Source of the DNA: Takakia lepidozioides | Taxonomy: Eukaryota > Plantae > Bryophyta | Direction of reading: 5' to 3' | DNA length: 64,000 nucleotides | Assembly (NCBI GenBank): GCA_030704615.1 | Contig: CM060734.1 | Location: 3,534,001-3,598,000 of the forward strand | Shown here: positions 13,517-54,600 of the stretch, piece after piece | Layout of the letters: every line of letters starts with the position of its first letter | Position numbering within the stretch: position 1 is the stretch's first letter | The notes under the pieces: model-generated | Seen by the model: only the letters and a program-made list of their open reading frames with translations | The model's database searches: none | Told to the model about the DNA's origin: nothing | Position numbers and translations under genes: made by a program

Positions 13517-14937
13517 CTAGTCATCCTCATCCTCATCCTCAGTGGAGGACTCAGAGCTATCTGATGAGTCTGATGACTCCACGCCCTTTGCCAGAGCACG
13601 TAAATGAGGCGGCGTTCCCCTAAGTCCCACAGAGCTCTCATCCAATCCCTCGGCATGACCCTCGACCTCATCCATACTAGTGCCCTGTAGTGCACTTATC
13701 CCCTCTGTGTTGGCCATGTTCTTCATGAGGGATTGCCAACCATGCTCCTTGGCGTAGTTGTACTCTACCGGAGATGGCTTCCTCTCAAACGCGCGTTGCT
13801 ACACATGCCACAAATTAAAGTCAGTTCTTCGCGATGATGGAGCCAGAAAGAAGACATAACAAAATCCATAGGGAAGTACGACTTACAAATCGCAAGATAA
13901 AACCCTTGGATCTGTCGGCGCCCCACTTGTGTGTGGATTCGTGCTTGTCAAGGCGGACTGTTGTTGCTTCGCGTGCCTGGTCAAATTTGGCCTTGTTTGC
14001 GGCATCACTCTCTCCCGCAATGAGTGCATCCCACGATACCTATGCACCCCCCCCCCCCCAACAATTAGTGAATTACACACATACGTTGCATCGAATCCAC
14101 CTCATTAATGCACATGCGACAAATGGAAGGTGACATGATTCAGGATTTGCCAACCTGTGTAATTCCATAAGGTGGTTTGGGTATGGCCCCCTTTTCCATT
14201 GCCCTCCGAATGATCTGTCTGGCACGGTACCTCCTGTCCTTCAAGTTTTGCCCCACCATCTCCATCACCCTTGTGTCACTCCAATTGCCCGGAAACCGGC
14301 GGTCTAACTCACGGGCATACGCCCGCTTCGCGCCAAAGTGCTGATCAGCCCACTCGATGTGCAAAAGGAACCACCTCAATGCGAGTTCGAAGGCTGGCTT
14401 CTTCATAGCCTCCCAGAACGCACCGCAGGGGTCACCATGGCGATTCTTCTCCACCGGTGGCACCACGATCTTTGTCAACTCCACGTCCTGTATCGCCAAG
14501 GCCTCCTTTGTTACCCCATTGCCCTCCCCCGCATGCACACTCACCCCTTCCTCTCCATGGGACTTCTTTTTCTTCTTTTCCTTTTCCTTCCCCTTCTCCA
14601 CGACCATCTCCTTCCCCTACCCCGCTACTTCCTCTCTCTCCTTCTCCCTCTCCCTTCTCTCTCTCTCCTCGGCAGCCCCTTCATTGATGGTAAAAGGGAT
14701 CTCGGGAGATAGAGGCCTCTTCTTCTTACCTTTGGTGTTTGGGTCCTTCATGAACACCACGTGCTCTCCCTCATTGGCAACCCCACTGGACTGCACCAAT
14801 GAGGCCAGCCATGTTGCTGCCTCCTGAAGACAAATAACCCCTCCAAATTCAAAAAAAGAAACAAACAACAAAGAAAATCATGCATGCAAAGGAAAGGATA
14901 AATCATGGAACAAGGTGCGACAGTTGTACCTTTGCAA
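13517..14937 (-). pseudogene. CACTA TnpA/Ptta-like accessory gene, 3' exons (14930-14937, 14155-14823, 13887-14039, 13517-13798)
   Basis: GT-AG exons in phase; WADQHFGAKRAYARELDRRFP...VGQNLKDRRYRAR...PPYGITQ-VSWDALI...HKWGADR resembles Transposase_24-type proteins; internal stop present. Confidence 0.6.
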
Positions 14938-15264
14938 TGTCAAGTTATTTTACCACTAGTGTGAAACTAGCTAGGAAATAGCTAGCTTTTACATATTGAC
15001 ATTTGGGATTGGCCCAAGTGTCAATCCAGGGGTCAAGGCAGATTTAGGCCCTGAAGTGATTATCTTCACGGCAAGCGCGGGAGGCTCATCTTTCTCGAGT
15101 TGAGCCTCACCGCGCCTAGCTATGGCACCGTAGTGTGGATTCCCCATGGCGTGGGGTGCACTTGGCTTGACTTGTATTTGAGTGATGAGGTTATATATGC
15201 ATGAGTTTATGCTTCAGCTTTGTGAGCTCGCATGAGCTTGTGCTTGTATTCTTCTTCTTTATCA
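14938..15264 (+). repeat. Repeat A1 of copy B
   Basis: Near-identical to 25392-25719; ends TTTATCA. Confidence 0.92.
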
Positions 15265-15280
15265 CTCGAGAAAGATGAGC
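15265..15280 (+). promoter_or_regulatory. Self-complementary primer-binding site candidate (copy B)
   Basis: CTCGAGAAAGATGAGC is the exact reverse complement of 15084-15099; no TGG tRNA-type PBS. Confidence 0.7.
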
Positions 15281-15919
15281 TCGTATCTATGAGTGCCAGA
15301 TACGAGTTAGTTGTAGCACTTGTGGTTTTTGCTTGAGAATGAGAGAAACCAGGTTGTTATGCAAGGAGCACCATGGAGCTCTTGGTTGTTAGAAGCGGAG
15401 GCGATGTGGGTTACGAGGTGGTAGACCTTGGCATTCGATCTTCAGCTTCAGAGATGAAAGCACCATGCTGCAGGTAATTCCAGAGCACCTTGATGGTTTC
15501 AGATTGTGTACATGCATGAGCAAGTACGATTGGGAAGAGGACCAGTCAAGAGCAGGTTATAGTGGCTTTGGTGGCAAAGCTGAGAACTGGACTTGGGAAT
15601 GCGAGCTTTCATTGTGTGAAGGATTGTAAGACCAAGCGAAAGGGCTGATTTGGCTTGGGGCAAATCAGTGCACTTTGTGGAGTATGTTGAGATTGGGTTT
15701 CAATCTCGAGTTTCAGCATTGAGAGGGCTCTTGTCATGGCAAGAGCAAGGCTGGAACAGGAGCTAAGAGGTGCGGCAAGGCCATGGAATGTGCACCTAGG
15801 GTTTCAGAGCTTGGAAGAAGAACTCTTGCACCACAAGATGAGTGTCTTGTGGCTGTAAATGTAAGCCTTAGGGTTTCAGGAGCTTGGCAAGGGCTGTGGA
15901 GTGCTTAGTCTTGTCTTAG

Positions 15920-16310
15920 AGACCATCAAGGAGCTAAGGAGCCAAGATAGGGGGCTGTTACCTCTTGTGTGAAGAGGTTGCATGTGTGGAGCATGTATTC
16001 AGCTCATTAAAGCTTCCATCTTCAAGCTTGGAGGGCAAGCAAGGAAGAGGGAAGGGCTAACTTCCCTTATGTGAGAGCAATGCATGTGTGGAGCATGCTT
16101 TCAGCCTGATGAAGGCTTGTACTTTCAGGTTTGGGAGTGCAAGAAAGAAAGCAAAGGGGCTGATTCTCTGGTGGTAAGAGTGGGGCATGTGTGGAGCATG
16201 CCTTCAGTCCATTGGGCTTTTGTTTTCAAGCTTTAGAGAACTAGAAGAGAAGGTAAGGGACTGATCTGCTCTTATGTGACAGTCCGACACTTGTAGAGCA
16301 TGTTCTGAGT
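15920..16310. repeat. Imperfect tandem repeat of about 103 bp (3-4 units) in the copy B leader
   Basis: CATGTGTGGAGCATG recurs at about 15981, 16083 and 16187, with a degenerate copy at about 16290. Confidence 0.7.
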
Positions 16311-16359
16311 TGGGGTTTCAACCTCAAGCCTAGATAGAGCATGGCTCTTGAAGTGGCAG

Positions 16360-16985
16360 GTGTGAGGGGCTGTGACAGGCTGTGCCTTATGGCCTGCGGG
16401 GCTGTGAGGGGCTGTGACAGGCTGTGCCCTATGGCCTGTGGGGCTGTGAGGGGCTGTGAGGGGCTGTGATAGGTGTGCCATGTGGCCTGTGGGCCTGTGG
16501 GCCTGTGACGGGCTGTGACAGGCTGTGACAGGTTGTGCCCAATGGCCTGTGGGGCTATGACGGGCTGTGAGGGGCTGCGACAGGCTGTGGCCTGTGGCCT
16601 GTGGCCTGTGGGGCTGTGACGGGCTATGAGGGGCTATGACAGGCTGTGATAGGCTGTGGCGAGCTGTGACAGGCTGTGATGGGTTGTGGCCTTTGGGGCT
16701 GTGACCCCTGTGACCTGTGTAGGGCTGTGACAGGCTGTGCCATGTGGCCTGTGGGGCTGTGATGGGCTGTGACAGGCTGGGACAGGCTGTGGCCTGTGGG
16801 GCTGTGACAGGCTGTGGCCTTTGGGGCTGTGACCCTGTGACCTTTGTAGGGCTGTGACAGGTTGTGCCTGTGGCCTTTGGGGTTGTGATGGGCTGTGTGA
16901 GGCTGTGACATGTGGCCTTTGGGGCTGTGATGGGCTGTGATAGGCTGCGGCCTGTGGGGCTGTGACGGCTGTGACCAGTGAGCTA
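16360..16985. repeat. GGCTGTG(A/G)-based minisatellite
   Basis: Dozens of GGGCTGTGA/CAGGCTGTG/GGCCTGTG units. Confidence 0.92.
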
Positions 16986-17712: not shown

Positions 17713-20700
17713 TTGAGTGTCAACACGGAGGTGCCACTAGTTGCTGGGGACAGTGCCGGTTCGAGCACTAGCGATACTAGTGGGTACACGAGACGAGGTG
17801 TGCGGTTTAGGCCACCGTCACCTCCCGTGTCTTCTACGGAAGGTTCTGATTCGGATTGTGAATCAAGAGGACTTATACAGGCGGTGCAAGTTGTTTCCTT
17901 GCCATTGTTGTGGGACACAATGGAGGAGATGTATGGAGCTACCAAGGGGCCACGAAGGTACTCTGGGGCGGTGTGCACCATCGAGTCGGATGATTTTATC
18001 CAAGAGTTTGATAGTTGGTGTGATTTGCAGCAAATGCACAATCCACAACTATTTATGCCTTTCATGGCATGAAAGAGGCTGTTTCAGCACCTTGAGGGGC
18101 CGCCTATGGATGATTACCATGAGTTCAGGCGGGGGCATGAGGATGAGATCAAGGAGTGGAGGATGTACTGGTCACCCGACTATGTCTCCATCACTAGGGG
18201 CACTAGAGTCACGAGGGCAGTGGCTACACCTGCCGCTGCACCGGCAGCTTCAGCAAGCAGCAGTGGGACTAGTAGGACTGGTGGTACCGTAGCTACGACG
18301 TCCACCCAAGCCACTACCGCACCAGCACCAGTTGTCGTGCCTGCCTTCAACCCTGTTGTGGAGTTCTTCGAAGAGTTGAGAGGGAACTACCAAGGGGTGA
18401 GGACAGAGAAGTTGCGGAGCTTGCAAGAGTTCCAATGGAAGCCTACTGAGAGCTTGAGAGAGGCTTTCACTCGCATGAGGCGCTTGATAAATGTAACCCA
18501 AGGGGTTACGAAAGCTCAAGCAGTCCAATTCTGGTATGGGATATTGGACAAGGAGCTGAGGAGAAGGGTGCGGGATGCAACTCTCCTACAAGCGGCCCAA
18601 CCCACCTTAGCAAATGTGTTTTTGCTGGCAGAGCGGATAGAGCTCAACATGGTGGAGGAACGAGTGGTCATGGTGGGATTTGCTAAAGAGACACCACGGG
18701 GTAGTGGTGCTCCTAGCCAACCACTACCTCAACGTGCTCAAGGCAACAAGGGGGCTCAGGTGAAGCTAAGGGAAGGGCAGAGAGGACCTCAGATGCAGGG
18801 GTCTCTCCCTTCATTTGCAGGCCAACAATGGGCGGATGTGGTGTGTTGGACAAGTGGAGGACCCCACGTCAAGAAGGATTGTCCAGAGGGAGGCAAAGGG
18901 CCGGCACATGCACAGCCTACACAGTTGCAGTGTGGGCATTGTGGCAAGCACGAGCATGGAGAGGCCCAGTGTTATGGTTTGCATCCCGAGTTGCGCCCAA
19001 GCCAGTTCCAAGGGAACAATGGTGGCCGAGGGCAAGGGGGAGCAGCCCAAAGAGGACGAGGTGGCCAAGCACGGGGTGTAGGCCAAGGGCAAGCTCAACA
19101 TGGCCAAGGACACGGAGGTCAGGGTGTTGACTAAGGCATGGCCAACCAGCTTCAGCAGCTAGAGCAGAGGCTCGCTGCCATGGCTACAGCTCAAGTGGTA
19201 CCGGCTCCAAGGCCGGATGGTCCACCTCCTGCTTCTAAGGGAGGAGATATGGGAGGCATGGGATTCATGTGCGGAGCAGCACTACCACTAGTGCAGGTGG
19301 AGTCTGCTGCAGCCGTGACTTGAGGAGCAGCACGAGTTCCTGAGCCACGAGGTGCAAAGGTGGAGTTGGATCCACAGCGTGGGGAGGCAAGCCGTCAGGC
19401 TAGGCTTCCTCAGTCATTCACATTGGCGGAGATAGTGTCGACGCCATCCATGGCACCTAGTTCTCGCCCGACTGTTACCGAGGCGGAGGTTACTATGCCA
19501 TTGGGGAGAGCTACACAGGTAGCACCACTACCTAGTGTTGCCAAGGCTACGGCAGCTAGTGTGCTGCTGGGAGCGGCCACATCTGTGTGTCAGGCTCCAT
19601 TGTTCTCGGCTACCATGATTGCGACGCCGGGGGTAAGATCAGCTGAGGTGTTCAGGCTGGCAGCTACACTCTGTGAGAGTGGGGAGGTTACTTCATCTTC
19701 TACGGAGATAGTGGGAGGTGTAGTGCTGGAGGGATCCTTGGATTTGAGGGTCAAGACTGCCACGGCGGTGCCATGGCAAGCTGCAGCTGTCAGGTTGATG
19801 GAGCTGCCAGCTAGGCCAACCATTGAGCGCGCCATGGTTACACCTGGAGTTGTCATGTTAGACAACCAGGATGGCATTTTCTGTTTGAGTGGACCGGCAG
19901 GCAAGAGGTACCGGCCACTGCGGGTCTTGTTGGACTCGGGAGCTCAGCCATTGATGTTGGGCAGAGCTGCTATTGCAGGCTTGGGCCTCACAGAGGCGGA
20001 TATGGAGCCTTGTCCTTTCTAGATACAGACGTCTCTGGGAAGATTAGAGCAGGCTTGGGGCATGACACGGCGTGAGTTGGCTATCAGACTACAGCCGAAT
20101 CATCCTACAGATGGCTCAGTGATGAGAACCAAGGCCATTGTGACAGACGCGGTCTCGTACGATGTCCTTGTTGGTGGGGCAGTGTTGTACCCCATGGGCT
20201 TCACCCTGGATTTTTGGGAGGAGTCAGCTTCCTATAGGCCCGGATGGCAGTCAGGGGAGGGCCGACGTATGCAACTCCCTGTGACGTTCAAAAGAGGAGT
20301 TGCGGTTGCCCAGCGAGGCAAGATGCCGACATTAGCAGCATTCACATCGGCAGTGAGTTGGCCTGGAGAGTTGCTTGAGTGCAACGCTCATTCAGAGGAT
20401 GTGCCACCTCCGGGAGAGCAGGATGACATGTATGGTATGGTGGAGTTGCCTACCATGGTTGCTCAGACTCCATTGTGGGGCACGAGCAAGGATTTGCAGC
20501 GGGATGCTGATCGACGGGTGCAACAAGCCTGGGTGGAGGCTTTTGTACCGTCAGGAGAGGAGGAGAGTGCGGGGATTGCACCAGGACCACCTCAGTTGTC
20601 TCCATTGAACACCACACCTATTGTGTGGCAGTATCCGGATGAAGGCATTTGTCTTTTGGACTTGTTTGGCGGGATCAGCACCGGATTGGCTGCTGTGTTA

Positions 20701-21895
20701 CAGGCAGATGTACGAGTTCGGCGTTACCTGTATGTGGAGAGGGATGAGACTGCACGACGCGTTTCACTTCGCCATGTTGCTCAGTTGGTGCAGCGGTACC
20801 CTGAGTTGTTGTCGGGTGTCTGCAGTTCGTGAATATCAGCAGGCCTTACCAGCAAACATTTCGTTGCTGGGGGCGCAAGATTTGGAGCGGGTTGGCTCCA
20901 TTGATCTGGTAGTGGCAGGTTGGCCCTACCAAGGGCATTCCTCAGCCGAGCATGGCAATGGATTGCGAGACTCGAGGTCGGGTCTGTTTTGGGAGATGGT
21001 GCGGGTTTTGCGCCATTTGCAGCTTCATCAAGCTGTATCTCTAGCATACATCTTGGAGAATGTGCCACTGATGGGCGATTCTTGGGCCAGGGTGATGGCC
21101 AGTGTGCATCAAGTCCGGTCGTGGCTTGGGTCAGCAGTGTTGCTAGATGCAGCTACAGTGGGGTCACGGGCTCATCGTCCACGGCTATGGTGGACTAATT
21201 TGATGCCACCCGCATTGCTCAAGCATGCATTTGATGGGGTGCAGCGGCCAGCACATCTCACAGTGGATAGCATTCTAGAGACAGGGAGGCAGTCTCAGCG
21301 TGTGAGACACGATGACCGTTTGCCTTTGGCAGTGGTCAACAAGGTTGGTCAACCACGAGCAACATTACCTACACTGCTCAGCTTCCCAGGATTGCATGCT
21401 TTCCGGGATAGTGGACCTGGCCTCCTGTGGGATGCTCAGTAGCAGCAGTTAGTGGAGCCTAATGCGGACAAGCGTGAGCGGGCAATGGGTTTTACCACTG
21501 GTACCACGGCGGTGTCGTCTCTTTCTGAGGCATCACATCGTCAGGTGTTGGGGCAAGCAATGGATCTCAATTGCTTGACCTGGATTATCAGCTTGGCTAT
21601 GGCTGAGCAACGCAGAGTGCGGAGTACACTTCCCTCGATGGTCTCTCTGCCTACTGAGACGGTACAGGCAGTGAGTGGGGGCGAGCATGTGAGGACCACG
21701 GGGTGCAGGCATCCATGGCACACGTGGGAGGTGCTCGAGGTTCAGAGGGAGTTGGCAGCCAAGGTGGCGGTGATAGATGAGGTTGGAGATTTTTCTCGGG
21801 TGGAGAAAGTCCTTGAGGATGAGATGATGGGGCAGGATGAGGCCTTGTCACTGACTGAGCAGGTAGGGAGTACTACTCAAGAGGTTGCAACATAG
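17713..21895 (+). pseudogene. gag: Copy B Gag - aspartic protease - C5 cytosine methyltransferase (stops and frameshift)
   Basis: Gag with two CCHC-like knuckles; VLLDSGAQ protease; LDLFGGISTG (motif I), GWPYQ (IV, Cys to Tyr at 20927), LENVP (VI), AHRPRLWWTN (VIII), ERAMGF and LGQAMD (IX/X). Confidence 0.88.
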
Positions 21896-24800
21896 TAACC
21901 ACTGGACGCGTCCTCTACCTCTAAACCCACTGGACTTAAGGTTGCAGTTACGGGGGACAATTGGGAGCCTGACATTGGACCCATTGTCACCGGAGGAGAG
22001 AGACGACGTATACGGCGGTTCCTGAGGGCTTATAGGAATTGTTTTGCCTTCAGTTTGAAGGACTTGGGAGCACTGAAGGGTCAAGAGATCCGTATTGAGT
22101 TGGCCACTGACACGCCAATCTTTCGGAGACCCTGACATGGAGAGGTTTTTGATTCAGATGAGGACTCAAGATCTCTGGGAGGCAGGTTTGGTGGAGCTCT
22201 CTGGTGGCAAGTATGCTTCAGCCACAGTGATGCCAGCCAAGAAGGATGTCTATGGCAATTGGACGGAGAGACGTATGTGCGGTGATTACCGGCCTGTAAA
22301 TCGTCAGACCAAGTCCGATAAGTATGCCATGCCAACACCAGAGGAGATCTTTGATGCCATCAGGCATGCTAAGGTCTTTAGCACTTTGGATTTAGGATCC
22401 GGATATCACCAGTTGCCAATCAAGGAGGCGGACAAACAGAAGACGGCATTCTAGGGGATCAATGAGCACGGCAAGGATTGCCTATATCAGTGGCGGTTCT
22501 TACCATTTGGGCTTAAGAATGCTCCTGCAGAGTTTCAAAGAGTCATGGATAGGATTCTAGCAGGGGTGGACTTTGCTCGGTGCTACATAAATGACATCAT
22601 CATCTTTAGTGTTACGGTGGAGGAGCATGAGAGACACCTTCAGGTGGTATTGGAGCGCTTGAGAGCGCACGGATTGAAGTTGCATCCGGGGAAGTGCAAG
22701 TTTTTCCACAACCAGATTGAGTATCTGGGTCACATGATATATCCTGGAGGATTGGGGGTACAGTAGACTAAGGTAGAGGCCATTGCACAAATTCCACGCC
22801 CCACGGATGTGAGCCGAGTTCGAGCTTTCATGGGGTTGGCAAACTATTATAGACGGTTTGTCAAGGGATTTAGTACCATTGCAAAGGCTCTAACCAAGCT
22901 GACCAAGGTGGACCAGGAGTGGCAGTGGGAAGATGAGCAGGAACGAGCTTTTCAAGAGCTCAAGGCGAGGTTGACCTCGGTGCCTATCCTGAGACGACCT
23001 ATCAGGGGGCGTCCCTTTCAGCTGCATACGGATTGGAGCATGCTGGGGCTTGGAGCGGTGCTCACACAGGTGGATGATGAGGGAAGTGAGTTCGTAGTGG
23101 CTTATGCTAGCTGCTCAAACAATGCTGTAGAGGCTAAGTACAGCTCATATGAAGGAGAGTGCTTAGTTGCAGTATGGGCCGTGGCACACTTCAGGTGCTA
23201 TCTATACGGCAATCTTTTCACCCTTGTCACGGATCACCAGCCACTCAAGTGGTTGATGGAGTCAGACAAGCTTACGGGGAAGCTTGCACGGTGGGCACTC
23301 ATACTCTAGGAGTATGACTTTCAGGTTGTGCATCGGTGGCATGGTGAGACGGACGAGGAGATGGTGCCGGGATGGCACGCATCTGCATTTTTGTGTATCT
23401 TGGCATCGGGAGGTCAAGTTGGACCTACAACATGGATAACTGTAGATGGAGTGTCTGAGGACCCTGAGGCTAGTGATGATCCAGGTGGTGCTAGAGATAT
23501 ACATGAGGATTTGGCTGTGTTGGACTACCTCCGCACGGGAGGCACGGCAGCCACTGTGACTGCCAGGGAGAGGGATCGGATCCTGCAATGAGCCAAGAGG
23601 TTCAAGTGGGAGGGGATACACCTACTTCAAGTGTGGGAGGATGGTCGGGTGAGGATTGTGCCTCACCCCACACAGCGTGCACGGTTAGTGCGGCATGCCC
23701 ATGAGGAGTTGGGGCATTTTGGAGTGCGACGCACTCACAGTTTACTGCAGGGGCAGTATTGGTGGCGTGGTATGCATACAAAGGTGCAACAGTTCGTGGC
23801 TAGGTGCATGGTGTGTGACAGGGTGCGTGTTTCATTCAACGCCCCTACACCATAGTTGCATCCTTTACCAATCATGGGATTGGGCTACAGGTGGAGTCTT
23901 GACTTCGCAGGACCGTTGCCACTGACTATGCGCCACCACAGACATGTGTTGGTGATGGTGGAGCACTTCTCCAAGTGGATTGAGTTGGTTCCATTGCTTG
24001 ACAAGGCTAGTGAGGGGGCTGCATATGCATTCTTGGATCGTGTGCTTAGCTGATTCGGTGCTCTAGCTGAGGTACTTACGGACCAAGGGAGAGAGTTCTT
24101 GGGGGAGTTTCAGGCTTTGTGTGATAAAGCCTTGATAGACCACCGCACCACTTCTCGGGATCATCCTGAGGCCGATGGCTTGGCAGAGAGAGTTGTTCAG
24201 ATGGTGAAGAGGGGTTTGCGCAAGTACGGCTTGCAGAATGGACACCTAGGAAATTGGGATCTTCAGGTACCTTGGTTAGCCATGGGCTACAGGTTCAGCA
24301 AGCAAGCATCACTTGCCTCCTTCTCACCATATTTCCTTCTCTTTGGCCGAGAGCCGGATTTGCCTACAGCCATTCGTAGAGACACTGCTCAAGTCCTTAA
24401 CCTTAACGATCCAGACGTGTGGGTACGTGCATATGGTCAGCGTGCAGAGTTGTTCAAGAAAGTCACGCCCATGGCTTTTGAGAACCTTGCCATTGCACAG
24501 CACCGTGATACGTTGAGGTATGCCACTATACGCAATGGAGGATATCGTCATGGGGTTCGGAGGTTTAGCCCTGGTGACTATGTTTATTTGCAGCAGACTG
24601 CTCTTACGACCCTGGATGTCACTGCAGGGCGTGTTATTCTGAGGGTTCGAGAGGTGTTGCCCTCAGGAGTCCTGATCTTGGAGGGTCGGGATGGCATGAC
24701 TTGGAAAGACCATGTGCGTAATTGTGCGCCATGTCACCTTCCCAATGTCGATGGCAGAGTTGACCCAAACTTGGCAGTGGTACCTGCAGGTTTGAGGTGC

Positions 24801-24941
24801 ATGCTCTGTGGGTCTGCCAAAGGGGCAGCCATCATGCTGGTGTATGATCGATGCTCAAGAGGTTGGCATATGGGATGCTTGACACCACCTCTTGAGAGGG
24901 TTCCTGATGGAGATTGGTTATGTCCACCCTGCTTGGGATAG
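21896..24941 (+). pseudogene. pol: Copy B RT - RNase H - DDE integrase - PHD finger
   Basis: RRMCGDYRPVN, LPFGLKNAP and YINDII; LHTDWS and VTDHQPL; HEELGH...C..C; SLDFAGP, TDQG and DGLAER; CMLC...DRCSRGWHMGC...DWLCPPC. Confidence 0.92.
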
Positions 24942-25190: not shown

Positions 25191-25908
25191 AGGGGGGCGA
25201 TTGTGTGGACTAGTGACTGCCATAGTGGGCAGCATAGTGGCAACCTAGTGACTGATTAGTTGTAGCCTAGTGGTTGGACTAGTGGCTGCACTAGTGGTGG
25301 ACTAGTGATGTACTAGTGTGTGGTGTGCACATGTGTTGTGTGGTTTTGGAGAGCGATGTAGTTATGTAGCGATATGTATGCGCACGACAGCTGTCAAGTT
25401 TTTTGACCACTAGTGTGAAACTAGCTAGGAAATAGCTAGCTTTTACATTATTGACATTTGGGATTGGCCCAAGTGTCAATCCAGGGGTCAAGGCAGATTT
25501 AGGCCCTATAGTGGTTATCGTCACGGCAAGCGCGGGAGGCTCATCTTTCTCGAGTTGAGCCTCACCGCGCCTAGCTATGACGTTGTAGTGTGGATTCCCC
25601 ATGGCGTGGGGTGCACTTGGCTTGACTTGTATTTGAGTGATGAGGTTATATATGCATGAGTTTATGCTTCAGCTTTGTGAGCTCGCATGAGCTTGTGCTT
25701 GTATTCTTCTTCTTTATCATTGTGTGGACTAGTGACTGCCAGAGTGGGCAGCATAGTGGCAGCCTAGTGACTGACTAGTTGTAGCCTAGTGGTTGGACTA
25801 GTGGCTGCACTAGTGGTGGACTAGTGATATACTAGTCTGTGGTGTGCACATGTGTTGTGTGGTTTTGGATAGCGATGTAGTTGTGTAGCGATATGTATGT
25901 GCACGACA
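25191..25908 (+). repeat. PPT (25191-25200) plus B1-GC-A2-B2 terminal block of copy B
   Basis: AGGGGGGCGA then TTGTGTGG; B1 and B2 are each about 189 bp; junction GACA-GC-TGTC at 25386-25395. Confidence 0.9.
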
Positions 25909-25912
25909 GCAA

Positions 25913-35207: not shown

Positions 35208-35242
<35 letters not shown>

Positions 35243-38434: not shown

Positions 38435-40096
38435 ATATTCTCATGATGTACTTTGTATACATCCGATTAATCGATTGATGTAAAATCTTTTCTTGTTGCT
38501 CGTGTGGGTTGCAACTTTGCATATGTGATCTAAACATACTTATGCACATGTGGACCAAATATTAGCTTGAACCAAGTTGATTCAATGGGTCATTCTAGTG
38601 TTGAACGCAGCTACGTGTCATAGAGACGGAAAATTGTGTTTCGCCTGCATATGATTTTTTTTTAATTCCATTTTCAAGCCATATGCTTAATGATAGCATA
38701 TGCAATGTGCGTGCAAAATTTGGGAGTAAACAAAAGTCATTTGTACCCATAACCAGATTTTGTTCTCTCATTTGCACTCCAAAGCTGAGTTATCTTCAAC
38801 TTCATGCACTTTTCATAGAGAGTTCTGCAAAAGTGACCCTAGAAACACACTTATTTTTTTCCATTTTTTGCATGATATAGTGGGGCAAAGCCCGATGTCA
38901 CAGAACAAAATAGAGCTAAAAAAAAAATCATTGCGCCCCTCAAAACCGCAATCATATGTTTTGTAAATGCAAACATTTATTTTAAATTCATTCAAATTCA
39001 TTCAAAATTGGTGCAAGGTGAGTGCGTCGTTGGGGAGGCAATTTTATTTTGTTTTATTTTATTTTTCACCTGCTGGATGGTGTTGCACACATATTTAAGC
39101 ACATGTAGGAAAAAATGAAGCTTGAGCCACATTCGTTTGTTGGGTGCAATAGCATGAGAGGATTTTCTTTCACATTAATAAACAAAAATTGGTTGATAGG
39201 GTGAATGCGTCATTGGGGGGGGGCAAATGACTTTGTTTGGGTTTGAAACTTTGCATGCGTTATAATGAAGTGTATGGTTGCAATGACACATTATAATATA
39301 TATCCCTATGTTCATTTGTTCGTATCAGGACTTTGTCCATCCCTTCCCGGTCTTTTCTCTTGGCACCCCATCCGAAAACAACCCAAGTACATCAGGCGGG
39401 AGCCATGGGCGAGACGCCGCCCCCACGGTACCGGACGATGATGACGATGACAGTGATAGTGATAGTGACAACAATAATGAGCATGGAATTAACCAGGAGG
39501 ATGTGCAAGCCATGGAGGATATCTTAATGCATCATGTGGCCGCTGATGCATCCCATGAAGAGAGAACCTGACCAATCAATGATCCTGAAATGGCCCCCTC
39601 AAATGACATGGAGAGGGAGGCGAGAACTCCCTTGTACGAAGGAGCGAAAGTGAGTCGACTTTCAACAATCTTACTTTTGCTCAATCTTCAAATTCGATTT
39701 GGCATAAGTAATGTTGGGATGTCTGCCATAATGCGAACTATTGCAGACTGTCAGGTTAAATAAGCACAGTGTGAAAACAGCTAGAATAAAACTAGTTATT
39801 TGTATTTAACACTTGGATTTAGGTCAAGTGTTAAATCAGATGTCAAGTTTAGTTTGACACCTGGTCCGTCTTATCTTCACGAGAGCGGCAGTCGCGCGGC
39901 TCATCTTTCTCGAGTTGAGCCTGCGTGACCAAGCTCCTGCATGCGGTTAGATTTGAGTGTGCTTATGTAGGGGTACAGGTTGTTGTGGGGTGGAGTCCCC
40001 ATAGCTTGGGGTGCCCCTGGCTCGACTACTATTTCTAAGAGTGATGGTTTGGTTTTCATGTTTTGTGTAAACAGTGTGTTCGTTGGTTTTCTATCA

Positions 40097-40110
40097 CTCG
40101 AGAAAGATGA
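40097..40110 (+). promoter_or_regulatory. Self-complementary primer-binding site candidate (copy C)
   Basis: CTCGAGAAAGATGA is complementary to 39901-39914. Confidence 0.7.
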
Positions 40111-43559: not shown

Positions 43560-46500
43560 GTGGAGGAGGTGCACATTGTGAGTGTCATTACAGAGTTACC
43601 CAAGGGTTTTGAGGGGAGTACGGCTACAGGCAGTAACAGTGAGAGTGGGTTCACAAGACGAGGTATTCGGTTCAGACCACCTTCACCGCCACCCTCAATT
43701 ACTGTAGAGTCAGACACAGACTCGGAGGCTTAATCAACAGGTGTGCACTTTCATTCGCCATTGTTGTGGGACGACATGGAGGAGATGTATGGAGCTACCA
43801 AGGGGCCTCGTAGGTACTCTGGAGCTGTGGGCACAATCGAGTTGGATGACTTTATCCAGGAGTTCGACAGCTGGTGTGATTTGCAGCAGATACGCAATCC
43901 ACAGCTATTCACCCCATTCATGGCGTGGAAGGGACTGTTCCAGCATTTGGAAGGCCCGCCTATGGACGATTACCACGAGTTCAGGCGAGGACATGAAGCA
44001 GAGATTGAGGAGTGGAGGATGTATTGGTCACCTGACTACGTCTCCATTACTCGAGGCACGACGCGACCAGTAGCTGCATCAGTACTAATAGCTCCCACTG
44101 CCAGCACTAGTAGTGGAGCAAGTAGTGCTGGTACTTCTGTAGGTGGTACCAGTTCAAAAGGTGCTACTACTCCTCCTGCCACGACTACAACACATGTGCC
44201 TAGATTCAACCCGGTGGTGGAGTTCTTCCAGGAGTTGCGGAGGAACTACCAAGGTGTACGGACAGAGAAGCTGCGAAGTTTGCAAGACTTCCAGCGCAAA
44301 CCCAGTGAGAGCCTGCGAGAGGCGTACACTCGTATGAGGCGCTTGATAAGTGTGACCCAAGGGGTTAATGAAGCTCAGGCAATCCAATTTTGGTATGGAA
44401 TTCTGGACAAGGAGCTCAAGAGAAGGGTGCGAGATGCAACCCTGTTACAAGCAGCCCAACCCACATTAGCAGATGTGTTTCTGCTGGCTGAGTGGATTGA
44501 GCTCAACATGGTGGAGGAGCGAGTTGTTACAATTGGATTTGGCAAGGACATGCCTGCACGGGGCACAGCTGTGAGCCCACAGGCACAAGGGACTGCCCAA
44601 CAGCGTGGTCAGGGGGGCAAGGTTGCCCAGCCCAAGTTCCATGGAGCTTACAGGGGACCTCAGGTGCAAGGCCCGTGGCATCTTTTGCAGGCCAACAGCA
44701 ACCAGGGGTGATATGTTGGACATGTGGAGGACCCCATGTCAAGAGAGATTGCCCAGAGAGTGGCAAAAGGCCGGCACAAGCACAGCCTACACAGTTGCAG
44801 TGTGGGCATTGCGGCAAGTATGGGCATGGAGATGCCGAGTGTTATGACTTGCATCCTGAGTTGCGCCCAAGCCAGTTCCAAGGGAATAATGGTGGCCGGG
44901 GGCGAGGTGGACCAGCCCAAAGAGGACGAGGTGGTCGGGCACGAGGTGCAGGCCAAGGGCAAGCTCCACATGGCCAAGGACGCGGAGGTCAGGGTGTTGA
45001 CCAAGGCATGGCCAATCGGCTTCAGCAGCTAGAGCAGAGGCTTGCTGCCATGGCTATAGCTCAGGCGGTATCGACTCCCAGGCGGGATGGTCCACCTCCT
45101 GCTCCTGAGGGAGGAGATATGGGAGGCATGGGATTCATGTGCGGAGCAGCACTACCACTAGAGCAGGTGGAGTCTGCTGCAGCCGTGACTCGAGGAGCAG
45201 CACGAGTTCCTGAGCCACGAGGTGCAGAGGTGGAATTGGATCCACAGCGTGGGGAGGCAAGGCGTCAGGCGAGGCTTCCTCAGTCATTCACATTGGCGGA
45301 GACTGTGTCAACGCCATCCATGGCACCTAGTTCTCGCCCGACTATTACCGAGGCGGAGGTTACTATGCCATTGGGGAGAGCTACACGTGCAGCACTGACA
45401 CCTGCTGCCAAGGCTAGTACAGCCGGTGTGTTATTGGGGGCAGCCACCTCTGTGTGTCAGGCCCCACTGTTCTCGGCAACAATGATTGCGACGTCGGGGG
45501 TGAGACCAGCTGCAGTGTTCCGACTAGCAGCAACACTCTGTGAGAGTGGGGAGGTCACTTCATCTTCTGCGGAGTTAGTGGAAGGTGTAGTGGCAGAGGG
45601 ATCCTCGGATTTGAGGGTCAAGACTGCCACGGCTGCGCCCTGGCAAGCTGCAGCTGTCAGGTTGACGGAGCTGCCAGCTAGGCCAACCTTTGAGCGCGCC
45701 ATGGTGACACCTGGAGTTGTCTTGTTAGACAACCAGGGAGGCATTTTCACTTTGAGTGGACCGGCAGGCAAGAAGTACCGGCCACTGCGGGTCTTGTTGG
45801 ACTCGGGAGCTCAGCCACTGATGTTGGGCAGAGCTGCTATTGCAGGTTTGGGCCTCATGGAGGCGGATATGGAGCCTTGTCCTTTCCAGATACAGACATC
45901 TCGAGGAGGATCAGAGCAGGCTCGGGGCATGACACGGCATCAGTTGGCCATTAGACTGCAGCCGGATCATCCTATCGATGGCTCAGTAATGCGAGCCAAG
46001 GCCATTGTGACAGACGCAGTCTCTTACGATGTCCTCGTTGGTGGGGCAGTGTTATACCCCATGGGCTTCACCCTGGACTTTGGGAGGAGTTAGCATCCTA
46101 CAGGCCTGGATGGCAGTCAGGCGATGGTCGCCGTGCACAGTTCCCTGTGACATTCATTGGGGTATAGCGGCTGCCCAGCGGGGCAAGATGCCAACACTAG
46201 CCGCCTTCACAGCTGCAGTTAGTTGGCCTGGAGAGTTGCTGGAAGGCAATGCCCATGCAGAGGATGTGCCACCTCCAGCAGAACATGATGACATGCATGG
46301 TATGGCGGAGTTGCCTGCCATGGTTGCTCACACTCCATTGTGGGGTACAAGCAAAGATTTGCAGCAGGGTGCTGATCGACGGGTGCAACAAGCCTGGGTA
46401 GAGGCTTTTGTACCGTCAGGAGAGGAGGAGAGTGCGGGTATTGCACCAGGACCACCTCAGTTGTCACCATTGGATACCACACCTATTGTGTGGCAGTATC

Positions 46501-47783: not shown

Positions 47784-50700
47784 CAACCACGGGACGCGTC
47801 CTCTACTCTAAGCCACTGGACTTAGGTAGGTTGCAGTTACGGAGGACAATTGGGAGCCTGACATTGGACCCATTGTCACCAGAGGAGAGAGACGACGTAT
47901 ACGGCGGTTCCTGAGGGTTTACAGGAATTGCTTTGCTTCAGTTTGAAGGACTTGGGAGTACTGAAGGGTCAAGAGATCCGTATTGAGTTGACCACTGACA
48001 CGCCAATATTTCGGAGACCCTATAGATACAGTGACATGGAGAGGTCTTTGATTCAGATGAGGACTCAAGATCTCTGGGAGGCAGGTTTGGTGGAGCTCTC
48101 GGTGGAGAGTATGCTTCAGCCACAGTGATCCCAGCTAAGAAGGATATCTATGGCAATTGGACGGAGAGAGTATGTGCGGTGATTACCGGCCTGTAAATCG
48201 TCAGACCAAGTCCCCGATAGGTATGCCATGCCAACACAGAGGAGATCTTTGATGCCATTGGGCATTCCAAGGTCTTTAGCACGTTGGATTTACGATCCGG
48301 ATATCACCAGTTGCCGATCAAGGAGGCGGAATAAGCAAAAGACGGCATTCTGGGGGATCAATGAGCACGGGAAGGATTGCCTATACCAGTGGCGGTCTAC
48401 CATTGGGCTTAAAAACGCTCCCGCTGAGTTTCAAAGAGTCATGGACAGGATCAGATTCTAGCAGGGGTGGAGTTTGCTCGGTGCTACATAGATGACATCA
48501 TCATCTTTAGTGCTACGGTGGAGGAGCATGAGAGACACCTTCAGGGGGTATTTGAGCGCTTAAGGACACACGGATTGAAGTTAAATCCGGGCAAGTGCAA
48601 GGTTTCCACAACCAGATTGAGTATCTGGGTCACATGATATATCCTGGAGGATTGGGGATACAGCTAGACTAAGGTTAGAGTCCATTGCACAGGTTCCACG
48701 CCCCCACGGATGTGAGCCGAGTTCGAGCTTTCATGGGGTTAGCAAACTATTACAGACGGTTGTTAAGGGATTCAGTGCCATTGCAAAGGCTCTAACCAAG
48801 TGACCAAGGTGGACCAGAGGAGTGGCAGTGGGGAAGATGAGCAAAGAACAAGCTTTTCAAGAGCTCAAGGCGAGGTTGACCTCGGCGCCCATCTTGCGAC
48901 GACCTATCAGGGGGTGGTCCTTTTCAGCTGCATACAGATTGGAGCATGCTGGGGCTTGGAGCGGTGCTTCACACAGGTGGGATGATGAGGGGAAGCGAGT
49001 TCGTAGTGGCTTATGCTAGCCGCTCGAACAATGCTACAGAGTCTAAGTATAGCTCATATGAGGGAGCAATTGCTTAGCTCAAGTGAGTGTGGGCCGTGGC
49101 ACACTTCAGGTGCTATCTATACGGCAATCTCTTCACCCTTGTCACGGATCACCAACCACTTGATGGAGTCAGACAAGCTTACGGGGAAGCTTGCACGGTG
49201 GGCACTCATCCTTCAAGAGTATGACTTTCAGGTGGTGCATCGACCGGGTTTGGTCAATCGCAATGCAGATGGGTTGAGTCGCAATCCATGCACGAGCCAA
49301 CAGGATGACACTGGAGCTCGGTGGCATGGTGAGACGGACGAGGATGGTGCCCGGATGGCATGCATCTGCATTTCTGTGTATCTTGGCAGCGGAAGGCCAG
49401 GTTGGACCTGCAACAGGGATGACTGTAGATCAAGTGTCTGAGGACCCTGAGGCCAGCAATGAGCAAGGTGGCGCCAAAGATATACATGAGGATTCAGTTG
49501 TGTTGGACTACCTCCGCACTGGAGACACGGCAGCCACTGTGACTGCCAAGGAGAGGGATCGGATCCTACAACGAGCCAAGAGGTTCAAGTGGGAGGGGAC
49601 ACACCTGCTCCGAGTGAGGATGGTCGAGTGAGGATTGCCTCACCCAACACAGCGGGCACGGTTAGTGCGCCATGCCCATGAGGAGTTGGGGCATTTTGGG
49701 GTGCGACGCACTCATAGTCTACTGCAGGGGCAGTATTGGTGGCGTGGTATGCACACAGAGGTGCAACAATTTGTGGCTAGGTGCATGGTGTGTGACAGGG
49801 TGCGTGCTTCATTCAACGCCCCTACCTCCACAATTGCACCCTCTTCCGATCATGGGATTGGGCTACAGGTGGAGTCTTGACTTCGCAGGGCCGTTGCCAC
49901 TGACCATGCGCCACAACAAGTACGTGTTGGTGATGGTGGAGCACTTCTCCAAGGGATTGAATTGTTCCATTGCCTGATAAGGCTAGTGAGGGAGCTGCGT
50001 ATGCATTCTTGGATTGTGTGCTTAGCCGATTCGGTGCTCCAGCTGAGGTACTCACGGACCAAGGGAGAGAGTTCTTGGGTGAGTTTCAGGCTTTTGTGAC
50101 AAGGCCTTGATAGACCACCGCACCACTTCTCGGGATCATCCTGAGACCGATGGCTTGGCAGAGAGAGTTGTTCAGACAGTAAAGAGGGGTTTTGCGCAAG
50201 TATGGCTTGCAGAAGGGACACCTAGGAGATTGGGACCTTCAGTTACCCTGGTTAGCCATGGGCTACAGGTTCAGCAAGCAAGCATCCTTGCCTCCTTCTC
50301 ACCATACTTTCTTTCTCTTTTGGCCGAGAGCCGGATTTGCCTACATCCATTCGCAGAGAAGCTGCTACAGTTCTTACCTTGACGATCCGGACGTGTGGGC
50401 ACGGCATGTGAGCAGCGTGCAGAGTTGTTCAGAGAGTCATGCCCATGGCTTTCGAGAACCTTGCCATTTGCACAAACCGTGATACGTTGAGGTATGCTAC
50501 CATACGTGGTGGGGCTATCGTCCTGGGGTTCGGAGATTCAACCCTGGTGACTATGTCTATCTGCAGCAGACTGCTCCTACGACCCCTGGATTGTGACTGC
50601 AGGACGTTTATTTGAGGGTTCGAGAGGTCTTGCCCTCAGGCGTCTTGGTCTTGGAGGGTCGGATGGCATAACTTGGAAGGACCATGGCGTAATTTTGCGC

Positions 50701-50913: not shown

Positions 50914-51162
50914 TGGGGATGGATACAACCATGGAAGGCTAACAAGAAACGCAAGGCCCAGGTACTAGGGGACCTTGAACACACGAGATCCTGGCTCAAG
51001 TTCACAGATTGCAAGACGGGCGACTAACGATGGGGCTACTCTTGTACCCGCCCCCTTGGTCTATAGAGTTTGAGTACAATAGGACAGTGATAAGGAACTT
51101 AGTACGGCTGTGGCTATTACATCTTGTAGCTATCTGGAGGTAGAGGGACCTATCCACCAGCT

Positions 51163-51686
51163 AGGGGTGCGATTGTGGCAGACTACTTTATTGTGCAATA
51201 TGTGTGGTGTGGTTTGGACAGCGATGTAGTTGTGTAGCGATATGTATGCGCACGACAGCTGTCAAGTGTAAATAAGCACAGTGTGAAAACAGCTAGAATA
51301 AAACTAGTTATTTGTATTTAACACTTGGATTTAGGTCAAGTGTTAAATCAGATGTCAAGTTTAGTTTGACACCTGGTCCGTCTTATCTCACGAGAGCGGC
51401 AGTCGCGCGCTCATCTTTTCTCGAGTTGAGCCTGCGCGACCAAGCTCCTGCATGCGGTTAGATTTGAGTGTGCTTATGTAGGGGTACAGGTTTTTGGGGT
51501 GGAGTCCCCATAGCTTGGGGTGCCCCTGGCTCGACTACTATTTCTAAGAGTGATGGTGGTTTCATGTTTTGTGTAAACAATGTTCGTTGGTTTTCTATCA
51601 TTGTGGCAGACTACTTTATTGTGCATATATGTGTGGTGTGGTTTGGACAGCGATGTAGTTGTGTAGCGATATGTATGCGCACGACA
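51163..51686 (+). repeat. PPT plus B1-GC-A2-B2 terminal block of copy C
   Basis: AGGGGTGCGA then TTGTGGC; B1/B2 about 85 bp; GACA-GC-TGTC at 51254-51263. Confidence 0.9.
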
Positions 51687-54600
51687 AGACTATATTCTTG
51701 CTCCACACTTGAAACCCAAGATGCCACGGTCGCGGAAAGAGGCGCGCGAAGTCTTGGACTCTGTGGGGATGGGCTATAAGATTTTTCATGCATGTCCATG
51801 TGATAAAAACCCTATACTACGGAGAGGATTCGCATCTCACCAAGTGCCCAAAGTGCAAGAAAGACCGATATCGGGATGATGTCCAAGGGAAAAAAGTACC
51901 ACGCAAGGTATAAGCGTCATCCCCCCTCGCATGGAGATTATTTTCTTTAATCTTCTCAATGTATGTAAAGTGTATTCCACAAAATTTAGGTTTTAGAGAG
52001 TAGTACTCATGCAAGATCTGATTGTGGTTTTGGAAGGAGTGAGTGAGGAGTGGAAGGAGCGACGTTTGGTTTTGACCATTCACACCCAAATGAGGGAGAG
52101 GCTGCATAAAGGGAAAGGCATAAGGGTGTTGTATTATGTGTGCTAATGGGATGATTACATGTGGGGGGCGTGGGGTATTTCATCCTAGAAAATGCATTAC
52201 TTTCCGATCATCCCGCGATTGAGGGCACAGTACCGAAGCCCCGAATTGGCCAGACTCATGAGATGGCACGCCTCGCATCGAGCCCCCGGGAAAGGTGTGC
52301 GGGCCACAAGATTCACAAGCATGGAGGCATATTGAAGAGATGTGGCCTTTTCTCTTGGAGGACCCACGACATGTCCACCTCGGCTTCTCCTCGGATGGGG
52401 TCAACCCATTCTCTGTCCAGTCATGTAGTCATTCCACTTGGCCGTGACCATGGTGAATTACAACATCCCTCCGTATCTTTCAATTAAAAAAGGCCATATC
52501 ATGTTGGCTGCCATTGTGCCAGGTGAGTGTACTCATTTCATGTTTATTATTGCCTTCGACTTTACATTAAACTTCTGATCTTTGACGCAATTCGGATGCA
52601 AGATTGATGAGTGACATAATCATGGAGTAAGACGTGTAATTCATTTTGTAGTATAATCTGCATATTGGTGGAGCATTGAAACAATGATGTGAATGTCTCA
52701 TAGGGAAAAAACAAGTGGCAAACATGGACACGTACTTGCGACCTCTTGTTGATGAACTTAAAGAGCTATGGAGGGGGGTCCCGGCATTGGATGCTTCACT
52801 TGACCCTATGGCCGGACAATCTTTTCAGATGAGAGGCATCTTGCTTTGGACAATGCATGATTATCCAGGTATATTATGTTCCCCATAAACAACCCGCGTA
52901 CATTCACTTGTCAATGCCGGATAATATCGATGAAAATTGGGATTGATTGAAGTAGCGGCGACAGTCTTGTGCACCGTAGTGGGGTAGATGGCATTATGGG
53001 CCATGCACATGACAACTTTTTTTTTGCTAATGTGGCGGGATGTGTAGTACATGACTAACTGTTTGCTCGGGCTAAGCACCAAAGGGTACCATGCATGCTT
53101 GCATTGTGGATGATCTTGATGCACATAGCTCCCGCCATCTTCACAAGATGGTGTATCCCAACTACCGCAAATTTCTTCCTATGAGCCATCGATGGAGAAG
53201 AAGAGAGAAACACTTGTTTGATGGCAAAGAGGAAGTACGTCCCCCCCCATGAAACCGTCCGGGCAGTTTTGGGAGGACCGATGGAAGGAGGCCCATGCGG
53301 GCACGGACGGTGAAGTGGACGTGCCCGACATGAAACGATTTTCAATCTTCTACGAGTTGCCATATTGGGCGGTACATATTCCACAAAAACACCGTCAATA
53401 TCCCTATGCATGCATGTGATATTGCACATTTGGTATGCGTTGCATTGTCACTTTCACGTAAAAAAATTTGTGTAAGTCTTTGTGGGTGGGGATATATGTA
53501 GGACCTGAAGATTCGTCATCTTCTAGATCCCATGCATATTGAGAAGAATGTCTGCTCGTCCTTTTTCGGGTTCTTCATGGCACGCCGGCAAAGAAGGGAG
53601 TGGCTGCAAAAGGAGATTCTCTCGGTGTTAGAAAGGAGCTTGAGGAGCAGGGTCGCATGCGCCATCTATGGGCCGAACAAAATGGTGTGGACCCAAAGGG
53701 TGTTGTACGGTGGAAGTATAGGCGCGCACCTTGGCAATGGACAAAGGAGGAATACAAGAAAGTGATAGCCACCATAAGTGCTGTCCGAACACCAACTGGT
53801 TATGGGTCATCCCTCCGTACGAAGTTCAGCGAAGAAGACGGGTCCATGGTTTGAAGTCTCATGACTACCACAATCTATTGCAAGACATCTTGCCCATTGC
53901 AGTACGTGGGACATTGACTCCCGAGGTTCGTGAGACAATCTATAGATTGGGAGGCTTGTTCCGGTGGATTTGCTCCAAAGAGTTGGAAGAAGCAGATTTT
54001 CCACGCATGAAGAAGGAGGCGGCGGAGGTAATGTGTATGTTGGAGATGCACCTTCCTCCCTCCTTCTTTGACATCCAAGTGCACTTGGTAGTGCACTTAG
54101 TGGAAGAGGCTTCGATTGCCGGCCCCGTTCATTCTCGGGGCTTCCTTGAGCGTTATATGAAGACTTTGAAAGGATTTGTAAGACAAATGGCGCACCCGGA
54201 GGGTAGCATGGCGGAGGGTACACGTTGCAAGAAGCTATGTTCTATTGCACGGAGTACATGGCAAGGGTGGATGAGGAAGCCCCTCGGATGTGGAAGGAAG
54301 AGGAGGATGCACGAACCAATGACATCGTTTTGCCCAAAAAATCGAAGAGGGTAAAATTGCCGACCTTGGTGATTGAGCAAGCGCATGACTTCATACTGAA
54401 GAACACCCCATCCATACATGAGTGGGAGGCAAGATACAATAATCTTGTTCAGCAACGAGAGGAGGAGACGCTTGCATGGAGGCGGAACCATCCAAGGCCG
54501 GTTACTAGACGCCCACGACGAGGAGCGGGCCGCCGGAATGTTCCTTCACAAAATTTGCCCATGGAATTGCAGCCTCTAAGTTCATTCCAACAGTGGCTTT

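Follow-up and report, generated by a model that had tools for sequence, protein, structure and literature searches.

The window analysed here is a stretch of 64,000 nucleotides from the bryophyte Takakia lepidozioides (NCBI GenBank assembly GCA_030704615.1, contig CM060734.1, positions 3,534,001 to 3,598,000 of the forward strand). It contains two retroelement copies, referred to below as copies B and C, in which a DDE integrase is combined with direct repeats in the unusual order A–internal–B–gc–A–B. A repeat finder and direct reading both confirmed this order at the positions given by an initial annotation of the same DNA, as they did the TG...CA ends (both copies begin with TGTCA and end with CGACA) and the perfect 4-bp target-site duplications (TSDs; GCAA and AGAC). 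The parts of the two copies, in window coordinates, are as follows.

Copy B
14934–14937, + strand: left TSD, GCAA (same 4 bases at 25909–25912)
14938–15264, + strand: repeat A1, 327 bp, starting TGTCAAG, 96.6% identical to A2
15084–15099, + strand: putative self-primer, a 16-nt perfect complement of 15265–15280
15265–15280, + strand: putative primer-binding site (PBS) for Tf1-type self-priming, adjoining A1
16350–16980, + strand: G/T-rich tandem repeats in the untranslated leader
20609–21439, + strand: cytosine-5 DNA methyltransferase (DNMT) segment (PF00145, E = 1.2e-7)
22077–22763, + strand: reverse transcriptase (RT), split by a stop into two pieces (RVT_1, E = 5e-23 and 3e-5)
22767–23306, + strand: Ty3/gypsy-type RNase H (RT_RNaseH, E = 9e-32)
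23592–24050, + strand: integrase H2C2 zinc domain and start of the DDE core (Integrase_H2C2, E = 2e-17; rve, E = 2e-3)
24054–24938, + strand: remaining integrase and C-terminal PHD finger (about 24798–24932; PHD, E = 3e-8)
22452, 22764, 23307, 23589, 23853 and 24051: in-frame stops of pol
25191–25200, + strand: polypurine tract (PPT) AGGGGGGCGA, adjoining B1, a motif common to all relatives at this place
25201–25389, + strand: repeat B1, 189 bp, ending CACGACA, 95.8% identical to B2
25390–25391: gc spacer between B1 and A2
25386–25395, no strand: perfect palindrome GACA-GC-TGTC at the B1/A2 boundary, putatively an uncut copy of the integrase site
25392–25719, + strand: repeat A2
25720–25908, + strand: repeat B2; at the A2–B2 joint the base before the PBS is fused exactly to the base after the PPT
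25909–25912, + strand: right TSD, GCAA

Copy C
39745–39748, + strand: left TSD, AGAC
39749–40096, + strand: repeat A1, 348 bp, with a putative self-primer at 39901–39914
40097–40110, + strand: putative PBS CTCGAGAAAGATGA
43734–44708, + strand: gag-like open reading frame (ORF) piece (Retrotrans_gag, E = 9e-4, below the curated cut-off)
48428–49877, + strand: heavily decayed fragments of RT, RNase H and the integrase zinc domain (RVT_1, E = 1.6e-11; Integrase_H2C2, E = 9e-18)
51163–51172, + strand: PPT AGGGGTGCGA
51173–51257, + strand: repeat B1, 85 bp
51258–51259: gc spacer
51254–51263, no strand: palindrome GACA-GC-TGTC at the B1/A2 boundary
51260–51600, + strand: repeat A2
51601–51686, + strand: repeat B2
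51687–51690, + strand: right TSD, AGAC

Within each copy, A1 and A2 differ by few substitutions (10 of 327 positions in copy B and 5 of 339 in copy C), as do B1 and B2 (8 of 189 and 0 of 84), and this divergence of only 0–4% indicates that all four repeats of each copy were alike at insertion. Between the copies, the internal regions are 85–87% identical over ~8 kb, with 584 transitions against 361 transversions. As the initial annotation had noted, the copies are otherwise clearly diverged: their leaders are unlike, and B measures 189 bp in one but 85 bp in the other. Most of A differs as well. Identity between the copies is 93% over the final ~60 bp of B and ~69% over the initial ~170 bp of A, while the rest of A is unmatched. 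The leader array of copy B, which copy C lacks, consists of degenerate G/T-rich units of ~10 bases each that resemble CTGTGACAGG.

With respect to coding content, both copies are pseudogenes. The Pfam domains of copy B nonetheless follow in Ty3/gypsy order (DNA_methylase, RVT_1, RT_RNaseH, Integrase_H2C2, rve, PHD), copy C keeps fragments of the same domains, and pol of copy B is a single frame over 2.9 kb that is interrupted by six single in-frame stops, all TAG or TGA. The initial reading of protease, RT, RNase H and DDE integrase in gypsy order therefore stands for the last three, whereas no aspartic protease domain was detectable in the window copies and the relatives yielded weak Asp_protease matches only. 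Evidence for gag in the window comes down to one weak Retrotrans_gag match; relatives carry zf-CCHC. An intact relative from Calypogeia fissa (L007) encodes a gag-like ORF, a DNMT ORF and a pol ORF of 1046 residues at 9869–13009 of this locus with RT, RNase H, H2C2, rve and PHD, and the closest solved relative of its pol is Ty3 Gag-Pol (E = 7e-98). Across eight diverse members the DD35E triad is invariant, with the canonical ~60 / 35 spacing, and a DNMT lies upstream of RT in copy B, in the intact Calypogeia element and in a Klebsormidium nitens copy (L009). At the C-terminus of the integrase, a PHD finger occupies the position in which chromoviruses carry a chromodomain. Its nearest solved relatives (for window positions 24798–24932 and residues 950–1000 of protein P0275) are the histone-H3-tail readers KDM5A/B, PHF21A, ATXR5, CHD4 and UHRF1, a likeness that suggests chromatin-guided targeting. 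By their sequence, the window elements are members of the Ty3/gypsy lineage, of the same kind as KnitGypsy-Dnmt3 of Klebsormidium.

This coding content also bears on whether the copies could be DIRS/PAT/Ngaro-type elements that integrate via a tyrosine recombinase. Such an identity would account for the split direct repeats A1...B1A2B2, and a methyltransferase is also described for some DIRS elements in passages of PMC5890265. We consider it highly improbable, as the integrase with its H2C2 and DD35E motifs is conserved, the insertions have 4-bp TSDs and TG...CA ends, and the closest solved relative is Ty3. Moreover, a profile search recovered no tyrosine recombinase (Phage_integrase, PF00589) from any ORF piece of the decayed window copies or any ORF of the intact relatives, the intact C. 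fissa element included, in agreement with the initial observation that none is recognisable beside the DDE integrase.

Using the integrase–PHD piece as query, we retrieved 412 representative clusters at E<=1e-30, with named relatives in Klebsormidium, Closterium, Calypogeia, Marchantia and Tetraselmis. The window copies share ~70–73% DNA identity with the Marchantia and Calypogeia copies, and in similarity searches the K. nitens proteins were 39–44% identical to the closest full-length relative. The repeat order is retained in the loci retrieved from Calypogeia, Klebsormidium, Marchantia and Closterium. Three Calypogeia copies read A-internal-B-gc-A-B (TSDs GTCA, ATTG and GATT), as does the 14.6-kb K. 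nitens copy L009 (TSD TCTT), which has the PPT and the self-primer site and encodes a CCHC gag, a weak protease match, a DNMT and a PHD finger. In Marchantia, the 3′ end of one copy is B1-A2-B2 and the 5′ end of a second element is A directly after host flank, and a Closterium copy shows the same repeat order. A scan of metagenomes by integrase–PHD alignment added 80 loci, several of them one place in different samples, and three further families; the A and B segments of these loci themselves served as the library for classifying them. Repeats may be mis-joined in metagenome contigs, but those of the copies used are 5–10% diverged, which makes assembly collapse unlikely in them.

About 23 distinct metagenome places end PPT-B-gc-A-B-flank and about 24 end PPT-B-flank, with no PPT-B-A-flank end among the classified places. 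The resolved 5′ ends, 13 from metagenomes and eight from the window and the genomes, all read flank-A-PBS (21/21). The initial annotation had left room for most members having ordinary BA...BA long terminal repeats (LTRs); when the A...BAB, BA...BA and ABA...B forms were counted, the latter two accounted for 0 of these 21 ends, and no BA...BA copy occurred among all loci. Full copies comprise 11 with A-internal-B-A-B and six with A-internal-B. Thirteen full copies from the window and other genomes have perfect and mutually different 4-bp TSDs, which excludes chance, and one more matches at 3/4 positions; in the metagenomes the TSDs are CATA, ATGT and (A/G)CAT for A-internal-B-A-B and TACA, TGTG, CCAA and GTAT for A-internal-B.

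Taken together, the layout occurs in >30 independent places in at least six hosts, chromosome-scale assemblies included, each place with its own TSD. These counts make it very improbable that the layout is an artefact or a secondary rearrangement of an ordinary LTR element, whether by misassembly, a nested solo LTR or tandem duplication, and the comparative data in effect refute that explanation. The repeat boundaries, moreover, match PPT and PBS to the base, and B1 and B2, at 85–190 bp and conserved between species, cannot be a target duplication of an inserted A. One contig could be claimed for a collapsed assembly, namely L001 (JGI contig Ga0620596_002343, 12.2 kb), the closest full-length relative, whose order is pol-B-gc-A-PBS-leader-gag. 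A single B-A unit there links the element's 3′ part to its 5′ part, which would fit a tandem, a 1-LTR circle or such a collapse, and the contig was set aside. The layout is thus a family trait and not a one-off rearrangement, as had been proposed from the two window copies, and is now known from dozens of metagenome places as well as from five further genomes or assemblies.

A few loci contributed nothing to the layout. L002 covers a messy stretch. Downstream of pol in L004, a K. nitens copy that sits at the end of a contig, there are neither B-A-B repeats nor a palindrome, and repeats were undetectable in L011, a distant PHD element. The Closterium sp. NIES-54 locus, L010, holds two copies of the element's 3′ part (end of pol, B and the start of A) 4.8 kb apart, and the first of these stops 55 bp into A, reflecting a local duplication or an assembly problem.

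The boundaries of A and B can be related to the priming of reverse transcription. Immediately after A1, all lineages have a run of 11–16 bases with perfect complementarity to a mid-A segment, and the sequence of this putative self-primer site differs by lineage (CTCGAGAAAGATGAGC in copy B, CTTAGAGAACT in Calypogeia, CAACTTGAGAAGTG in Klebsormidium, CTCGAAGAAC in Marchantia). For comparison, the chance expectation of a fixed-position 11-mer match in 341 bases is ~8e-5. When the start of the RNA is set at the mid-A segment, its first bases pair with the PBS in the minimum-energy fold (z = -8.9 for copy B), and in copy B this pairing is the outermost helix. Such complementarity, co-varying in Calypogeia, Klebsormidium and Marchantia, has the signature of Tf1-type self-priming and would place the transcript start in the middle of A. 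At the other end, the PPT (AGGGGGG...) lies directly before B1 in all copies. Because the PBS directly follows A and the PPT directly precedes B, B-gc-A corresponds to the unit formed by the unique 3′, repeated and unique 5′ regions of an LTR (U3-R-U5), and the ordinary linear complementary DNA (cDNA) would be BA-internal-BA; A1 of copy B would hold the upstream promoter part and R-U5. The initial proposal that B and A together form one LTR bounded by PPT and PBS is therefore well founded in both the PPT position and the co-varying primer site. Complete identical terminal LTRs are nonetheless not present, the 5′ end having only A and the 3′ end B-gc-A-B.

A second constraint comes from the ends used for integration. 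The TSDs abut the start of A on one side and the end of B on the other, and the same two sequences meet inside the element as B1-gc-A2. This boundary is a perfect 10-bp palindrome, GACAGCTGTC, in the window, Calypogeia and Closterium, and has decayed to GATAGCTGTC in Marchantia. In Klebsormidium, where the element ends are TGCC...GGCA in place of the TGTC...GACA of the window, the palindrome is GGCAGCTGCC (GGCA-GC-TGCC), so that both arms have changed in step around an unaltered GC spacer. If the palindrome were cut after each CA, two 3′ ends would result, both recessed and facing 5′ GC overhangs, as is normal for 3′-processing.

The joint between A2 and B2 behaves differently from the other boundaries. 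In all eight copies from the window and the assembled genomes, it is the U5 end fused to the U3 start to the base. In one metagenome family, the A1–PBS boundary is constant in 7/7 copies (...aat before TCTAGAAAAAC) and the PPT–B1 boundary in 13/13, whereas the A2–B2 joint deviates in eight of 13 distinct copies. Some of these copies lack 1–2 bases of the A end, others have gained T or TC, which match the opening bases of the PBS, or G, which matches the final PPT base, and there is a loss of 3+5 bases affecting both sides. In a second metagenome family, two of seven copies carry extra sequence precisely at the joint, 1 base in one and 19 bases in the other, the latter being L014. (The deviating joints are those of loci L065, L079, L057, L075/L076, L049, L053, L067, L014 and L031.) Length variation of this pattern resembles that of retroviral 2-LTR circle junctions. 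In addition, a test for separate inheritance of B1 and B2 found no distinct lineages, which implies that B2 is copied afresh from the same template as B1. The variable joint argues for cDNA ends that would be joined anew in each cycle, and not for a joint inherited via RNA.

The same boundaries speak to a different origin of the layout, in which reverse transcription yields linear A-internal-B-A-B by template switches as in DIRS elements, with no circle and no end-joining. The internal B1-gc-A2 would restore both ends from a shorter transcript, and the integrase would only trim the GC dinucleotide. Attractive features of this scheme are that it accounts for the sole permutation observed, that the same A1...B1A2B2 layout of tyrosine-recombinase elements is explained in this manner (PMC7192593) and that GC has the usual size of a 3′-processing overhang. 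We nonetheless regard it as unlikely. Given the co-varying primer site after A1, the 5′ terminus of the minus strand must coincide with the end of A, so that the B2 strand beyond could not be made by continuous synthesis; B2 begins exactly at the base after the PPT; and the untemplated length variation at the A2–B2 joint, with its PBS- and PPT-derived bases, points to joined ends and not to copying. We also attempted to derive A-internal-B-A-B on paper by strand transfers alone, invoking a second plus-strand primer at the B end, palindrome priming in trans, read-through transcripts or rolling synthesis on 1-LTR circles. All four schemes gave A-internal-B, an inverted repeat or A-PBS joints, and never a joint of the A end with the B start.

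In terms of the route as a whole, the best model, to which we give slightly better than even odds, is that the integrase opens end-joined cDNA at the internal palindrome of the upstream LTR. Minus-strand synthesis would start directly 3′ of A, primed by the transcript's own 5′ end, and plus-strand synthesis at the PPT directly 5′ of B, giving a linear BA-internal-BA cDNA. Every cycle would include a fresh joining of the two ends of this cDNA, whether through formation of a 2-LTR circle or through host end-joining that immediately follows integration. Acting on the palindrome of the upstream LTR, the integrase would cut after each CA to leave recessed 3′ ends with GC overhangs, and the insertion product would be A-internal-B-gc-A-B. 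This permutation alone would keep the promoter and R upstream together with a second R downstream, and would hence be the only replication-competent form and the only one able to found a lineage.

Several points weigh against this model. The two identical palindromes of a circle predict A-B-A-internal-B equally often, and it was seen at 0/21 resolved 5′ ends, although dead copies of this form should still occur in genomes; a circle model is therefore incomplete and needs an additional polarity. The circle or free cDNA is reconstructed wholly from integrated copies, and the transcript ends from complementarity. Ordinary indels, arising in an A/T-rich stretch of copies that are old, could account for some of the joint's length variation. 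Finally, the ~24 metagenome places with A-internal-B and intact TSDs are not measurably older, and some of them were perhaps cut at both palindromes of a linear cDNA. The route put forward in the initial annotation, in which the cDNA circularises and is opened inside an LTR, consequently fares well on the end-joining-type variation of the joint and the conserved palindrome, and less well on the unseen A-B-A-internal-B form that a simple circle predicts and on the circle itself, which is deduced only indirectly. The restriction to one permutation might reflect a polarity in integrase loading, the upstream palindrome being nearer the cDNA end, or integration before end-joining with single-strand annealing removing the other form, or a reverse-transcription route not derived so far.

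About half of the older relatives take the A-internal-B form. They have a single B, without A2 or B2 but with an intact 4-bp TSD (full copies L012, L040, L069 and L090 and ~20 further metagenome loci), and compared with B-A-B copies they are not clearly older (p = 0.06 and 0.80). They are most simply explained as later deletions between B1 and B2, and direct production at integration may also occur. In all nine families examined, B (72–190 bp) is shorter than A (~280–660 bp), which would put the palindrome nearer the left than the right end of the linear cDNA.

These observations can be combined in a further alternative, in which the integrase cuts one palindrome of the linear BA-internal-BA cDNA and inserts both new ends, and the host closes the remaining chromosome break. 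That break would be bounded by the original cDNA ends, so that end-joining would give B-A-B and single-strand annealing A-internal-B; cuts at the downstream palindrome would nearly always be annealed via the long A repeats, leaving A-B-A unseen. The end-joining signature would thereby be covered, as would the missing A-B-A form and the many A-internal-B copies that carry TSDs and are equal in age. The consistently shorter B agrees with it, and a single palindrome can organise an integrase tetramer in vitro (PMC1905944). The proposal is, however, purely inferential. It predicts roughly half A-internal-B in each host, whereas all eight young or genome-derived copies or 3′ ends (window, Calypogeia, Klebsormidium, Marchantia, Closterium) are B-A-B, and some A-B-A survivors would still be expected. 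For these reasons we hold it to be quite improbable, and retain the opening of end-joined cDNA at the upstream palindrome as the preferred model.

Turning to the insertion sites, in-script removal of copy C left a 121-codon ORF spanning the rejoined site. An ORF with DUF4218, which is typical of CACTA/En-Spm proteins, lies 2 kb to the right of copy C (window 53731–54351) and fits insertion of that copy into a CACTA element. When copy B was removed in the same manner, no ORF of at least 80 codons crossed the rejoined site, and the protease and RT of a different LTR retroelement lie just to its left (window 10516–12062, minus strand); copy B may therefore sit in or beside another LTR element rather than a CACTA transposon. 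The initial claim that removal of the elements restores interrupted CACTA frames thus finds partial support, for copy C and not for copy B. No empty-site copy of either insertion was found within the 64-kb window. The whole studied region is bracketed by a 730-bp direct repeat (window 8383–9109 and 57125–57849; 93.6% identical, 49 kb apart).

In the textbook view, retroviral and LTR-retrotransposon integration uses the two ends of a linear cDNA, and end-joined circles are by-products. Against this background the finding is real and unusual, and it places strong constraints, at the level of sequence, on a non-canonical route of integration. In several streptophyte lineages, a DD35E integrase appears consistently to leave the cDNA-end junction inside the provirus, with an LTR-internal palindrome serving as the ends. 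The wider proposal of an ancient streptophyte gypsy clade, spanning Klebsormidium, Closterium, liverworts and metagenomes associated with mosses, with obligatory cDNA end-joining, followed by opening of the internal palindrome by the DDE integrase, falls in our judgement just short of an even chance. If true, it would provide a natural case of productive integration from an end-joined intermediate, which is a dead end for retroviruses. It would also separate the split-direct-repeat layout from tyrosine recombinases, since such repeats would point to permuted, end-joined intermediates rather than to the enzyme of integration, and standard LTR finders and classifiers would miss or misfile such elements. 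Since the family carries both a DNA methyltransferase and a histone-reading PHD finger, it bears on the interplay of transposons and host silencing, and the integration question is testable in Marchantia, a tractable model.

The closest known system is KnitGypsy-Dnmt3. The initial annotation had known of no description of this layout, but the Fig. 4c legend of de Mendoza et al. 2018 (Nat Commun 9:1341, PMC5890265) already assigns to KnitGypsy-Dnmt3 a DIRS repeat structure with Gypsy domains. The terms 'target site' and 'PHD' do not appear in that article, its K. nitens results section gives no integration route, and the KnitGypsy-Dnmt3 passages do not treat TSDs, the palindrome or the priming sites. 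As far as those passages go, the layout was noted in print in 2018 but never analysed, and the route of integration was not worked out; the name 'KnitGypsy' occurred in no other paper in the literature searched. As described there, KnitGypsy-Dnmt3 resembles the window elements in its gypsy-type pol, its Dnmt3-like methyltransferase within the polyprotein and its DIRS-like repeats. The window copies differ in being in another host, in their shorter repeats and in their ends (TGTC...GACA versus TGCC...GGCA in K. nitens).

Among split-direct-repeat elements, TOC1 of Chlamydomonas is a tyrosine-recombinase element, and those of DIRS order are not known to have a protease or to make a classical TSD. 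The order A1-internal-B1-A2-B2 of the tyrosine-recombinase elements, in which the internal B1A2 joint is the joint of the element ends (PMC7192593), is identical to that of the window elements. PAT-like and Ngaro elements of this order, however, have a tyrosine recombinase and no DDE integrase, whereas the window kind has a DD35E integrase and a 4-bp TSD. Troyka, which the initial annotation had named for comparison, proved unrelated, with a 3-bp TSD, CG...CG ends and ordinary LTRs, and the REXdb survey covered neither these hosts nor a PHD integrase.

As for priming, Tf1/Sushi and Tcn1, whose self-priming is summarised in PMC6317226, provide a parallel in that the bases after the 5′ repeat of the window elements are complementary to a segment within the repeat, which fits self-priming. 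By a comparison of features only, those elements differ in having ordinary LTRs and a chromodomain integrase in place of a permuted LTR and a PHD finger. The nearest parallel for the proposed cleavage is found in retroviruses, where the foamy-virus integrase (in cells) and the HIV-1 integrase (in vitro) cut the palindromic LTR–LTR junction of 2-LTR circles (PMC1180852, PMC1905944). In each case a DDE integrase cuts, or in the window elements would cut, a palindrome at its CA positions and so generates two 3′-processed ends at once. The retroviral palindrome, however, is the junction of the cDNA ends, and cutting it restores an ordinary provirus. In the window elements the palindrome lies inside the LTR, and the A2–B2 junction of cDNA ends would stay in the provirus, giving the permuted layout.

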